Origin: Rhodosorus marinus CCMP1338
Lineage: Eukaryota; Plantae; Rhodophyta
DNA length: 64,000 nucleotides
Reading direction: 5' to 3'
NCBI GenBank assembly: GCA_029953675.1
Contig: JAMWBK010000003.1
Location: 310,001-374,000 of the forward strand
The translations under genes were made by a program, and so were the position numbers. Every line of letters begins with the position of its first letter. Within the stretch, counting starts at the first letter, position 1. Below, piece after piece: positions 861 to 53,300 of the stretch. Under the pieces are notes generated by a model. It saw only the letters and a program-made list of their open reading frames with translations. It made no database searches and had not been told where the DNA came from.

Positions 861-1285
861 TTCATAGGTACTATCAGGTATTTTTTCCTATAGTATGAGT
901 GCTGGGCGTCATGTCCATGACGCCCTTGAAAAGTCAGTTGACTCACTGGTTTGTCAACGTCTCCTAGCTGAGCTGATCTATTTTTATAGAACACCAGTTT
1001 GGTCTCCAATGTTGAGTTAGTTCATGGTACTAGCGGGTTTTTTTCGATGGTATGAGTGACGTGGGTATCAAGTCCATGACGAAGCAAGGACGCCACGGAC
1101 ATGACGCTCTTGCTTCACCCGATTGACTTACTGGCTTGTCAACGGCTCCTAGCTGAGCTGATATTTCTCTATAAAACACCGGTTTAGGTCTCGATTGGTA
1201 CGACAGTTGACAGGGTTCTTCATAGTGCTAAGAGGTGGGTTTCGATGGCATGAATGCTGAGCGTCATGGCCATGCGCCTTGACTC
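861..1285. repeat. Degenerate tandem repeat, ~185-bp period, ~2.5 copies
   Basis: Core CTCCTAGCTGAGCTGAT at 961-977 and 1146-1162; TTCAT-GGTACTA..GTATGAGTG..GTCCATG block recurs at ~861, ~1021 and ~1218. Confidence 0.7.
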
Positions 1286-27730: not shown

Positions 27731-28766
27731 CTAAGCCGCCTCTGAGAACACGAATTGGATGATCTCCTTCGCCACTTCAATATTCAAAGAGTTGCCTAGT
27801 AATCTTCTTCGTTGACCCTCCGAGGTATGTGGTGGGAACCTAAACGACTTTGGAAAGCCCATCAGGCTACAGAAGAAATGTTCCAGGTCAGAGAACGAAA
27901 ACTAGAAGCGCTGGGATGGTATGAGCTCACCTCATTATCTCCCTTGACGAGAAGAGCCGTACTGGTGAGTCCGGTCCGCATTCGTAGAATCTCAGCGGTT
28001 TTATCGAGTTGTCTGTACATAGCAGAGGACCGCCAAACGTATGATGTCCGTAGCCTTTCGTGAACGTCGAACATGAAAAGCTGGACGGTGTCACAATGTC
28101 ATGCTTGTAGCCGGGTCTCAGAAGCTGCTTTCTAGGCTTCAAGTCCGTTTGTTCATCTTCAACAAGAAACGCTTGAATCGGTTTTGGGTCATTTCTCGAC
28201 TTGCCGTGCTCGTCAAAATACTTAGAGCCCGGTATGGAGCGCAGAGGCTCGGATGTACTGCTAGAGGCGAAGGCCCGCTCTCGAGCCACAAGGTAGTACC
28301 TTTTCCTTTCGTTCGGGGTACCGAAATCGGTCGAACTTAGTTGAAATTGTACAACGTTCAGGTTGATATCCTCGAGGGCTTTGATGAGCTGCTCGCAACT
28401 TGAGGAAGTTTCAAATGGTGGTACGTTCTCAAGAATCACAAACTTCGGACGAGCTCTTGGCAAAAGGCTCACAAGGTGGGCCAGAGCATCAGATCGAGAG
28501 TCCGCAGCACCAAGCTGCTTACCCGCCGTCGTATGGGGTTGGCACGGTGGTGACAAAAACCAAACTGCATGCGATAACCGCTCCGGAGCAATCTTCTCAA
28601 GTGAGGCTGGCTCGGGCTGAAGACCAAAGTTCTCGCAATACACGGTATTCGCGATCAGGTTTGTATCAAAAGCACGCTCAATTTGCACACCCAGATCCCT
28701 CCCAAGCAAGCTTAGAGCCATGTGCCATCCTCCAATGCCGGAGAACATTTCAACTGCACTTAGCAT
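27731..28766 (-). CDS. DNMT2: DNMT2/TRDMT1 tRNA cytosine-C5 methyltransferase, 2 exons
   Basis: Exons 28766-27931 and 27866-27731. Motifs MFSGIGG (I), LSPPCQP (IV), LENV (VI), ERKRYY (VIII), TFTKGYG (DNMT2 TRD), LMGFP..F.FP and LLGNSLN (X). Confidence 0.92.
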
Positions 28767-29577: not shown

Positions 29578-30612
29578 TTAAATGTCGTCCACATCGTCGT
29601 AGTCGAAGACAATGTCCAGATCTCCCTGGTCCTCATTGTCTGACAAGGCCTCGTTGAGCGCTGTAGAATCGGGTATTTCGCGGTAATGCTTCAGACTGCG
29701 CGCCTCGTCAGGAGAATACTTAAGAATGATATCTGCTTTCTGGTCCTGGAAGTCTCGAAGACCAATGAGCACAATGTCACCTGTGTTCACCCAAACCTTC
29801 TTCCTCATTTTTCCGCGAATGTGGCACAGTCGTTGTCTGCCGTCGAAACACGCAGCCTCGCACCTACCATTCCCCAGCATACGCTTCACTTGAGCGTATT
29901 CTGCAAATGCCATAGACGGAACAGCAAAGCAAAAGTCAACGGTCAGCAGGCTTTCCACGAATCCAAGCCAGACAAACAATTTGAAGTAGGCCACCGATCA
30001 CAAGGGAGTGAAAGATCAGAAACGAGGAATTCACACTAATCTGTATCCTCAAAGAACTCATAAGAGCTCTAGGAATCATCAGTATTAAGTGGTAACATCA
30101 GAAAGGGCCTTAGAACTCCTTATAACTCGAACCTCAACCTTCAAAAGGTATGAGATCAACTACCAACATCAAGCGAGGCGCAAACCATTATAAGCAGCTC
30201 ATCGCGCGTACAAAAATCAAGCAAACCACAAGTCCCGGTGAAGGCGTAGTGAGCTTTTCTACTCAACGTGTAGAGCTAAAAAAGCAAGCAGGCGCAGAAC
30301 AGCGGATGATATGACAAACAAACCAAACAATCAGGGAGACACAAACTCGAGGCGGAAAACGTGCTCACAAACTTACCCTGGCCATCCTCCTTGAACACCA
30401 GCTCACGCTTCTCGTCCTCGTTGTCATTCTTTCCTCTCCTTCGATTCTTTCCTCCCTTTCCTGTTATCCACAGCAGTAAAACAAAAAATACACCACCGCT
30501 CCGTTAGAAGATCGAATCCTTGCAAACAACCTCATCAAAACGTCCTATTCCTGTCCAAAACAAACACCAAACGCTCAAAGCATCTCAAAAACTTACCCTT
30601 ATTCTTAGGCAT
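29578..30612 (-). CDS. EIF1A: Eukaryotic translation initiation factor 1A, 3 exons
   Basis: Exons 30612-30597, 30460-30377, 29900-29578: [46 protein letters not shown]...[11 protein letters not shown]..., acidic tail ending DDVDDI. Intron 2 is 476 nt. Confidence 0.98.
30012..30086 (-). ncRNA. Intronic box C/D snoRNA, predicted guide for 18S rRNA Gm1572 (yeast numbering; snR57-like)
   Basis: Minus strand: C box CTGATGA (30082-30076), D box CTGA (30019-30016). The 12 nt GAATTCCTCGTT just upstream of D are complementary to conserved 18S AACGAGGAAUUC. Lies in the 476-nt eIF1A intron. Confidence 0.8.
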
Positions 30613-50305: not shown

Positions 50306-53300
50306 CTAGCCTGTAAAAATTATGTCCTTCCTCCTGATGATCCCAATCAGGCGCCCTTCGGAGAGCACGAGCGCGTGCGTTGGCATTAACATAACAAACA
50401 TGAAGTGCAATTGTCCCAATAGCATTGTATCGGTAACAGTGAGCGGCGCAAGGTCGACAGGTATTCTGAATTTTTGCTGCAATAGTGACACATCCCTTGA
50501 CGAGGCGCCTCCTTTGCGTTCTCTCTTCAGCGGTGGCTTTTTGTACCTGTCCTCTTCTTCTGCCGTACTCGATGGCTCCGGCTTGTTCCCGCTTTCACCT
50601 CCGGCTTCGTCCGAAGTTCCCGACGAGGAACCTCTGGCACCATTCTCCACAATGCCCTCCTCGAGTACTAGATCATCAGATGAAGGCAGCCGTGGAACGA
50701 GAGGAATTGGAACAGGAGAGGTCACATCTATAGTCCCGACCTCGTCTAATTCCACGCTGACTGAGTTCGGGTTGACGCGTGCCTCCATCTCAACCTGGAA
50801 TAAACGGCAATTCGATAGCCCTCGATAAGCTTAAGACGACCATTAGGAGACGAGCTCTAGTCGCGGTTTTGATTGTCCGCTCATCTCCAAACAAACGAGA
50901 AACTAGAGCTTGTCTCACCGATGAAGAAGATCCCTTCTTTGCGTATACGAGCTTTGCCCGTTCAATCATGTAAACGAGCGTCGACCTCCTAACTGAGCCA
51001 ATGAGGCCCCCATCGGGTCCAACAACCGGATAAGCGTCCAGGTCCATGCCTTTATCTCGAACAAGTTCTTCCGCTTCCTTAACAGTGCAAAGCCGAGGAG
51101 CAGAGACAACCTCACGATCCATCACCTGTCGAGCTGTCATCGTCGGTGCCAAATCTCTCCTCATGTGTGGCATATAGGCCAACTTCTACTCGCGACATCG
51201 AGAGAATAACGTATAAGAACCGTTTTCAGTTCCTCTCCAAAAAAAAAGGCTCTTCTTCCGGCAAACTACCTTCATGATGATCAAAGTATCGTACAGTCCA
51301 CGTCCAAATCCATTGCCTACAATAACCGCAAGGAGTACAGCGAGGAGCGACGGGATGACGTGGCTCAGCTGTCCAGTCACCTCAAAGAGTACGACCGCAC
51401 AAGAGAGGGCTCTGGTCACTCCAGCAGTAAACGCTGCTGCTCCAACAACAGCAAATCCACCCGGGACAATGGCCGACCCAAATATAACTTTCAAGACTTC
51501 TCCGTATAGCCTACCGATTGCCGAACCCAGAAGGAAACCTATAGCAGGATCAGGTAGACATGACGAAGACTTGAGGCCATGGTTCATAAGCTTCGTATGG
51601 ATTCAACTGCATCAGGGTGAATACGTACATGGAATAAAGACTCCAGCGGGCACTGGAAGACCAATAGACACCACGACGAGCGGAAACTTGATCAGGAGCA
51701 GAATAAAGACGTCAAACCAGGACAGCTTCAAGTGGTCAGAGGAGAACATCTCGTTAATAGCCTCACGGGGATCCAGTCTAAAGAGCCGGGTGTGATAGGA
51801 CAGGGCCGCCGAGACTAGAGCGACGCTTCCGACTATTAGATAGCGGTTTCCACGCATTCCTATTATTCGACCTCGTAGGTCATACACGGTCTTCACGCAT
51901 TTCACAAAGAAAGCCCCGGCAACACCTGTGGTAACGAGGAATGAGATAAATGATTCCAAATCAGTTTGCGAGGTTGCAACGGTCTGTCCTCGAAGATGCG
52001 TGCCTCACCCATAATGACCCCCAGGAACGCAAAGAACAGCAGCTGTCGGCGTCGATAGTCATTCTCATCGAACTGCGTGTTGTCAAGTGCCTCCACAAGC
52101 GGCGATTTGTAGAATATATCGTAGAAGACAGCACCAGTAAGGGTTGCGAGTATGGATTTCCAAAAGGTTGGTACAAGATAATATGACGACGTCGTCTCCA
52201 AAGCGTACAAAACTCCACCGATTGGAGTGCCTAAGGAATCCAAAATGCTCCCGCTCAGTCGCTATGCGCGGACCCACAGACAAGGTCATGATACGAAACC
52301 AGGCAAGCCAACGTACCAAACGAAGACGCCAATCCAACGCTACACGCACTGACCATGAACTGTAGTCTCAAAGCGCGATCCCTCCGAAGCACTCGAAACA
52401 TAGGAAGCCTCGACAAGTGATGAGCAATAATACATGCAATATGTACATTCGGTCCCTCCCATCCTACTGGAAGTCCACCTCCTAGAGAATGCGATTCAAA
52501 GGTTGGTTAGCGCTCGTCTTCGGGGACTGCATATCTCAACCTCTCTTCGCCGTGAGACTATACCTATAGCACAAATTAGACCCACGGATTTGGCCAACAA
52601 GGCCCACATGCTTAGGGAAGGTTTGTACTTGTCATAAAAGCCGGACATGATGGCCTTCATTTGGGGAATTCCGGATCCCTCCGCTTCCACGCTCAGTACA
52701 CGGCAAACGAGCGTCGACAGGATGCAGAGCACGACACCGGTGAGAATATATATAAAGAACCCGAGCCAACCCCCCGTTTCGGTTACTGAGATTGATTCTC
52801 TTGCTGAGGAGACCATGTGAACGCTCAAGTCGATCAGAAAGATTATCGCGGCCGGTATGACTCCAAGTAGAGAGAGGTAGACTATCACCCGCCCGAGGTT
52901 CACCATCTATGGACGCGGATTGGAGACAATTGGATATGTTTAGCACCAAGGATTCTACGAAGCAGGCAAAGAAATTGGAGATTTTGGGGGAGAACTGAAA
53001 CTGACCTGAATTGTAACTTGCCCTTCGGCAAACGCCCTGAATCCAGATCGAAGTCTATCCCGTACGCTGCTCGTTTCGGACTGACGGCGAAAACCCTGAA
53101 GTCCTTGAGGCTCTTCATGCTCCTCAAAAAACGAGAATTGAACCTCCGATACATTCGCTCTGTTCCCATCCTCATCATCAACGCTCGTATCCTAGCAAAA
53201 AAGTGAAAAACCCCAAACCCCGACGGAGTCAAATACATGAACGAGGAAAGACGATCATCCCACTTACGCCTTTCTTACCAAAAATTGACTCGATCGTTTC

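Follow-up and report, generated by a model that had tools for sequence, protein, structure and literature searches.

The second intron of the gene for eIF1A in Rhodosorus marinus CCMP1338 very probably encodes a functional box C/D small nucleolar RNA (snoRNA), which would guide 2'-O-methylation of the 18S ribosomal RNA (rRNA) at the nucleotide equivalent to G1572 of yeast. This species is a unicellular member of the red-algal class Stylonematophyceae, and the stretch of its nuclear DNA analyzed here, referred to as the window, comprises 64,000 nucleotides (nt; positions 310,001 to 374,000 of the forward strand of contig JAMWBK010000003.1, assembly GCA_029953675.1). Positions given below without a locus name are those of the window. 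The predicted mature RNA measures about 75 nt (30012..30086, minus strand) and lies in the sense orientation within its host intron; its ends were placed about 5 nt 5' of the C box and about 4 nt 3' of the D box, in line with the protection of termini in C/D small nucleolar ribonucleoproteins (snoRNPs). As judged from its sequence, the element is the functional counterpart of yeast snR57, with the same predicted target.

The C box reads UGAUGA (30076..30081; all features of the element are on the minus strand), its six core letters agreeing with the consensus, and the D box is a consensus CUGA (30016..30019). From the first letter of the C box through the last of the D box there are 66 nt. The antisense guide GAAUUCCUCGUU (DNA GAATTCCTCGTT, 30021..30032) is separated from the D box by a single U (T in the DNA, 30020) and is complementary at 12 of 12 positions to 18S AACGAGGAAUUC. 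A first-pass annotation of the window, made from the letters alone, had described a span of 67 nt from CTGATGA to CTGA and a 12-mer one nt upstream of the D box; the span, which takes in the C at 30082 before the C box, matches the sequence, and the 12-mer was found as described (30032-30021, spacer at 30020, D box at 30019-30016).

Counting five nucleotides upstream from the D box leads to C30024, which is opposite the G of the 18S sequence AAC-G-AGGAAUUC; this G is predicted to be 2'-O-methylated, as the equivalent of yeast Gm1572 (2'-O-methylguanosine). It would lie three nt 5' of the Bud23-dependent 7-methylguanosine (m7G; G1575 in yeast), the equivalent of Escherichia coli G1338 at the P site. 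No rRNA gene was found in the window by an Rfam scan. Both the complementarity of the 12-mer to conserved 18S and the assignment to G1572 by the rule of the fifth nucleotide from the D box had been proposed at the first pass, and both hold: the pairing is complete, snR57 guides the methylation of G1572 in yeast 18S, where the modification is stoichiometric (PMC4344503), and the yeast 18S at the site reads ...CUUCAACGAGGAAUUCC, according to a published antisense oligonucleotide, ggaattcctcgttgaagagc... (PMC12900514). The site has served as a small-subunit primer site for distant protists (PMC3045979). At least 120 eukaryotic ribosomal DNA (rDNA) stretches were retrieved with a 22-nt pattern spanning it, so that AACGAGGAAUUC is present in them by construction. 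No 18S carrying the site was found in the viral contigs searched. As a separate observation, at least 120 species-representative bacterial and archaeal assemblies hold contigs with eukaryotic 18S rDNA (L098-L177 and more), many of them units of about 9 kilobases (kb), which represents contamination.

The host gene extends over 29578..30612 on the minus strand, with its ATG at 30612, and consists of three exons (30612-30597, 16 nt; 30460-30377, 84 nt; 29900-29578, 323 nt). Intron 1 (30596-30461) measures 136 nt. Intron 2 (30376-29901), the host of the snoRNA, measures 476 nt, runs from GTAAGT to TTGCAG and is inserted in phase 1 after the Q33 codon of ...KEDGQ. The spliced product of 140 amino acids shows 100% identity to the R. 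marinus protein NDN08_002854 at NCBI, and the gene annotated on contig JAMWBK010000003.1 of the same assembly covers an identical span of 1035 nt. In a transcriptome contig from another strain of R. marinus (L001) the eIF1A coding sequence is uninterrupted, and the splice junctions are supported by this contiguity. Regarding the intron itself, the transcript contigs L001-L003, which stem from that strain and from relatives, are spliced and uninformative; an 11-mer match in L003, located within a convergent coding region, was rejected as chance. The first-pass annotation had called intron 2 oversized, which is a fair description against the two other introns measured in the window (136 nt for intron 1 and an inferred 83 nt in a CLC-like gene, 52008-51926). 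It had also expected the element to escape protein-centered annotation, and the gene calls of the assembly list eIF1A alone at this locus. A branch-point-like CUGAC, identified by its match to the consensus only, is located at 29942..29946 (minus strand); its A29943 lies 72 nt 3' of the end of the D box, close to the roughly 70 nt given at the first pass, and 42 nt upstream of the 3' splice site, which is itself 115 nt from the end of the D box.

A snoRNA of this kind is found in the same phase-1 eIF1A intron, after ...KEDGQ and on the sense strand, in R. marinus and in four other red algae, namely Cyanidioschyzon merolae 10D (L090 1675-1754; intron at about 275.6 kb of AP006499.2), Gracilariopsis chorda (L091 1724-1807), Agarophyton chilense (L094 1656-1738) and Chondrus crispus (L093 1667-1752). 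The guide core AUUCCUCGUU, followed by a single spacer nt and a D box, is common to all five. The introns measure 476 nt (R. marinus), 257 nt (C. merolae), 349 nt (G. chorda), 278 nt (A. chilense) and 250 nt (C. crispus), and the corresponding distances from C box to D box are 66, 80, 84, 83 and 86 nt. The D box is AUGA in C. crispus and CUGA in the other four, and in all five 98-142 nt separate it from the 3' splice site downstream. In the five-way alignment (A1) four blocks show no variation: UGAUG in the C box, the greater part of the C' box, AUUCCUCGUU in the guide and UGA in the D box. Outside them invariance is confined to a few isolated columns, and the flanks and spacers cannot otherwise be aligned. 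At the C' position, UGAGGA is present in Gracilariopsis and Agarophyton, UGAAGA in C. merolae and UGUUGA in Chondrus. The florideophyte guide is GUAUUCCUCGUU, which yields 10 contiguous pairs. The two Gracilariales are 81% identical across the snoRNA and 41% across the remainder of the intron. When a sequence model was made from the four other red algae, with Rhodosorus left out, it gave a single match in 97 kb (the window plus the Galdieria, Porphyra and Pyropia loci and that of an intronless relative), and this match was 30014-30045 on the minus strand (E=0.008). The comparison of eIF1A introns across red algae had been proposed at the first pass, which had tied its prediction to boxes conserved in relatives; a C/D snoRNA with this guide core occupies the corresponding intron in each of the four other species, and its boxes are conserved. 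The pattern is that of a C/D snoRNA under purifying selection and is hard to explain otherwise.

The same data bear on the proposal that the motifs co-occur by chance in a long unconstrained intron, or that a conserved splicing element of eIF1A merely resembles a snoRNA. The 12-mer alone is indeed not unusual when one mismatch is allowed (2 occurrences in the window, 0.6 expected), and the 10-mer guide core ATTCCTCGTT recurs without boxes at 51942-51933 on the minus strand, at the 3' end of the inferred 83-nt intron of the CLC-channel-like gene (51926-52008). This recurrence, with no C box and no CTGA after it, is attributed to chance (about 0.1 expected per window). The composite motif TGATGA-N30-60-GAATTCCTCGTT-N-CTGA, on the other hand, was found a single time in the window, whereas 100 dinucleotide-preserving shuffles did not produce it, and four other red algae show the boxes, the guide core and their spacing again in the corresponding intron, the rest of which is unalignable. 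What is conserved, moreover, are precisely the letters by which a C/D snoRNA is defined and by which it complements rRNA. Chance and a splicing element alike are effectively refuted by the comparative data, and we assign them next to no probability.

Homologous layouts were also sought in public metagenome contigs with the pattern C box, N30-60, GAATTCYTCGTT, N, CTGA. At least 80 stretches show the snoRNA-like layout, whereas only a few would be expected by chance according to a rough estimate. Many of these resemble genuine snoRNAs. Among the 77 distinct sequences listed, box-adjacent stems of at least 4 base pairs (bp) were present in 56%, compared with 30% after shuffling, and several of the matches sit in tandem clusters. 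In three contigs (L056, L080 and L089) eIF1A exons flank the match, and the eIF1A encoded there is 100% identical to that of C. merolae 10D; among the matches listed, eIF1A exons adjoin the snoRNA in C. merolae contigs only. Some of the metagenome homologues (L016, L020, L021, L032, L047 and others) are double guides, which carry, in addition to the 18S guide, GTTATCCCTGTC ahead of a CTTA or CATA D'-like box, and several loci hold two or three tandem copies. GTTATCCCTGTC would be the complement of a conserved stretch of the large-subunit rRNA, ACAGGGAUAAC.

A genuine snoRNP might nevertheless act mainly as a folding chaperone for pre-18S rRNA, or on some other RNA, with the G left unmethylated or only partly methylated. 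The position of the site, 3 nt from the m7G in a region of 18S that folds late, would suit such a role, and we know of no Gm at the equivalent position in humans, which would make the modification non-universal. However, the spacing of one nt between guide and D box is exact in the five red algae and in the metagenome homologues, and this is required by the fifth-nucleotide ruler but not by pairing alone. The yeast counterpart, moreover, methylates its target stoichiometrically (PMC4344503). We regard a chaperone as quite improbable and favor a methylation guide.

Several observations weigh against a functional methylation guide and are gathered here, together with the remaining anatomy of the element. 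The nucleotide preceding UGAUGA is a C and not the purine of the RUGAUGA consensus. Between the C box and the guide, an 11-nt stretch UUCCUAGAGCU (30075-30065) is followed by two candidate D' boxes, the 4-nt CUUA (30064-30061) and AUGA (30061-30058), by a 9-nt stretch UGAGUUCUU (30060-30052), by the C'-like box UGAGGA (30046..30051), the position of which is conserved in the red-algal alignment, and by a 13-nt spacer (30045-30033). The minimum-free-energy fold places an internal 7-bp hairpin (AGAGCUC/GAGUUCU, 30053..30070) between the C and C' boxes, and the D' box is ambiguous; both candidates are inside this predicted hairpin. For the stretch between the C box and D', the 120 rDNA stretches listed contain no conserved complement of at least 10 nt; because this stretch forms a hairpin and lacks such a complement, the element is probably a single-guide snoRNA. 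A box-adjacent terminal stem was not found, the best duplex of the 14-nt flanks having a free energy of +2.9 kcal/mol, and an external 5-bp pairing (AGGCC/GGCCU), located about 30 nt beyond the boxes at either end, is equaled by 7% of shuffles and is not significant. This absence of a terminal stem is the main structural weakness of the R. marinus snoRNA. The target in the 18S of R. marinus, finally, is deduced from the universal conservation of the site and from the invariant guide core in the five red algae.

Recognition by Rfam is likewise weak. At the curated gathering thresholds there was no match in the window. In a permissive search of 701 bases around the site, snR57 (RF00474) was the only snoRNA family proposed, and the whole model was aligned over 30009-30088 (minus strand), with UGAGGA and the guide aligned as well as the C and D boxes; the alignment, however, scored 20.7 bits (E=2.4 for the 701 bases), compared with a gathering threshold of 50, and the other red-algal orthologues gave no snR57 match at E<=10. 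The match agrees with the first interpretation, but it depends on the same features and does not amount to membership in the family. Regarding the snR57 counterpart announced at the first pass, functional equivalence is retained (same predicted target, one D-box guide), whereas membership in the Rfam family is not (20.7 versus 50 bits). A permissive search over the whole window did not list snR57 and yielded four matches (Afu_513, TB11Cs5H2 and two fragments of long non-coding RNAs), all of which were dismissed as noise; that to Afu_513 overlaps a coding exon. The Afu_513 match is weak (19.9 bits) and overlaps the 10-mer at 51933-51942. Between the gene for ribosomal protein L13 and eIF1A, both Gracilariales show weak matches of the C/D snoRNA type, far below threshold, to ceN89 in L091 (18.8 bits, 1046-1102, minus strand) and to GlsR7 in L094 (18.1 bits, 1217-1259, plus strand).

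The position of eIF1A intron 2 is common to C. merolae, Galdieria, Porphyra/Pyropia, the three florideophytes and Chlorella vulgaris, and not all of these introns carry the element. No snoRNA was found in the 92-nt intron of Galdieria (L004 3169-3260), no intact copy in the introns of 320-338 nt of Porphyra umbilicalis and two Pyropia assemblies (L007 3101-3438, L008 3101-3426, L009 3101-3420), and no guide-like 8-mer in the intron of about 360 nt at the same position in Chlorella vulgaris (L096 ~1278-1637). A supposed decayed relic in Porphyra (TATCCTGTT...TTCCTCGT) was rejected, its local alignment to the Gracilariopsis snoRNA scoring below the mean of shuffled introns. Because Galdieria, the Bangiales and Chlorella vulgaris share the position, the intron position is older than the red algae; and because the intron is shared without an intact snoRNA in Galdieria, Porphyra/Pyropia and Chlorella, the position either predates the association with the snoRNA or outlived it. 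The lack of an intact copy in Galdieria and the Bangiales further means that the element is dispensable at the eIF1A locus in some lineages, which also counts against the assignment. On present sampling, three deep red-algal lineages show the association of snoRNA and intron, although not universally.

The R. marinus copy might, alternatively, be crippled, with intact boxes but, for want of a terminal stem, unable to form a stable snoRNP and degraded along with the intron, any methylation being guided from elsewhere. In favor of this view, R. marinus has no box-adjacent stem, whereas Gracilariopsis has one of 4 bp (CUGU/GCAG), and intact copies are absent from the eIF1A intron of Galdieria, Porphyra and Pyropia. 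Yet the C and D boxes of R. marinus agree perfectly with the consensus and its guide pairs at 12 of 12 positions, which is longer than the florideophyte guide, although decay should erase these features first. Stemless intronic C/D snoRNAs are, moreover, common: a terminal stem of about 4-5 bp is frequent and is scored by snoRNA finders but is not obligatory, and many intronic C/D snoRNAs lack a stable one and use short or external stems instead. The flanks in C. merolae and Chondrus are likewise without significant pairing. A crippled copy is for these reasons considered improbable, and the functional guide snoRNA remains the preferred reading.

The layout, the complementarity, the sense orientation within the intron and the conservation are as observed above; the steps that would lead from them to a modified ribosome are modeled on established C/D snoRNP biology. 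The snoRNA would be co-transcribed within the eIF1A pre-mRNA, and during splicing of the intron its C and D boxes would form a kink-turn and recruit Snu13, Nop58, Nop56 and fibrillarin. The debranched intron would then be trimmed by exonucleases to a protected snoRNP of about 75 nt, the 12-nt guide would pair with AACGAGGAAUUC of 18S in the pre-ribosome, and fibrillarin would methylate the 2'-OH of the G opposite C30024. The Rhodosorus snoRNA is most likely the orthologue of one that was already resident in the eIF1A intron before Cyanidiales, Stylonematophyceae and Florideophyceae diverged, and that has remained there.

Compared with yeast snR57 (RF00474), the element shares the predicted target G, a guide placed one spacer nt before the D box, a single active guide and a C'-like UGAGGA. 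It differs in being intronic in a protein-coding gene, whereas the yeast RNA is processed out of a polycistronic snoRNA transcript. The yeast guide, unlike that of Rhodosorus, contains a G-U position (GAAUUCUUCGUU), the consensus D box of snR57 is AUGA, and outside the boxes and the guide the two RNAs show no sequence similarity. Yeast snR57 also keeps a conserved C'/D' motif beside an inactive second guide (PMC3116282). Common descent of the Rhodosorus snoRNA and yeast snR57 is plausible.

In its sense orientation, its location in a highly expressed translation gene and its occurrence as one snoRNA per intron, the element resembles the intronic snoRNAs of animals, plants and fungi, and the red-algal snoRNAs lie about 50-115 nt upstream of branch-point candidates, as is the case for intron-encoded snoRNAs in those groups. 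The orthologue in the C. merolae eIF1A intron agrees with that of Rhodosorus in intron position, 12-nt guide, spacer and D box; it measures 80 nt from C box to D box and has a consensus D' box (CUGA) after a 19-nt stretch, whereas the Rhodosorus RNA measures 66 nt and has a hairpin there. In the literature we found no mention of snoRNAs within eIF1A introns and none of any snoRNA from Rhodosorus, and to our knowledge eIF1A had not previously been described as a snoRNA host. For C. merolae, 11 of the 39 introns have been reported to carry stable C/D snoRNAs, in a preprint that does not list the carrier introns and leaves the snoRNAs for a later study (10.1101/2025.12.01.691491), whereas a homology survey of plant snoRNA families gave no C/D family in this species (PMC5122169 supplement). 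An attempt to tie the C. merolae eIF1A intron to the snoRNA intron 'Q117' failed, the link being a guess from the chromosome record number only.

Two further observations concern intron 2 and its surroundings. The intron is about 220 nt longer in R. marinus than the orthologous introns, and its upstream part contains a second C/D-like pair (GCGATGA, 30205-30199, and CTGA, 30101-30098; minus strand, 108 nt). This pair was rejected as a snoRNA, its would-be guide having no conserved complement in the 120 rDNA stretches and nothing comparable being present in the other red algae. The gene directly downstream of eIF1A (27927-28766, minus strand; NCBI gene call) encodes a C-5 cytosine DNA methylase domain (PF00145, precomputed match).

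Intronic C/D snoRNAs in red algae were already known and their biochemistry is textbook matter; what is new, as a modest addition, is the synteny of snoRNA and host intron across Cyanidiales, Stylonematophyceae and Florideophyceae. The gain therefore lies in annotation and evolution, not in mechanism. The element adds an unannotated, predicted functional RNA gene to the genome of R. marinus and predicts one rRNA modification beside the P-site m7G in red algae. The shared eIF1A-intron snoRNA would also be a concrete case of why certain introns persist in intron-poor genomes, and intron deletion, already achieved in one strain of C. merolae, offers a genetic handle on the eIF1A intron as the source of the guide.

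The balance tips slightly toward a broader view, according to which snoRNA and eIF1A intron have been linked since the last common ancestor of the living red algae, more than 1 billion years old by the usual dating, and the snoRNA is the reason why the intron survives in lineages that shed almost all of their introns, by which we mean C. merolae (about 39 introns) and the intron-poor florideophytes. If this is true, Galdieria and the Bangiales have either moved the guide to another locus or lost the methylation. The association would then be among the oldest documented syntenies of a snoRNA and its host intron, and the idea of introns kept for their RNAs, which was proposed for the thermophilic Cyanidiales, would extend to mesophilic red algae.

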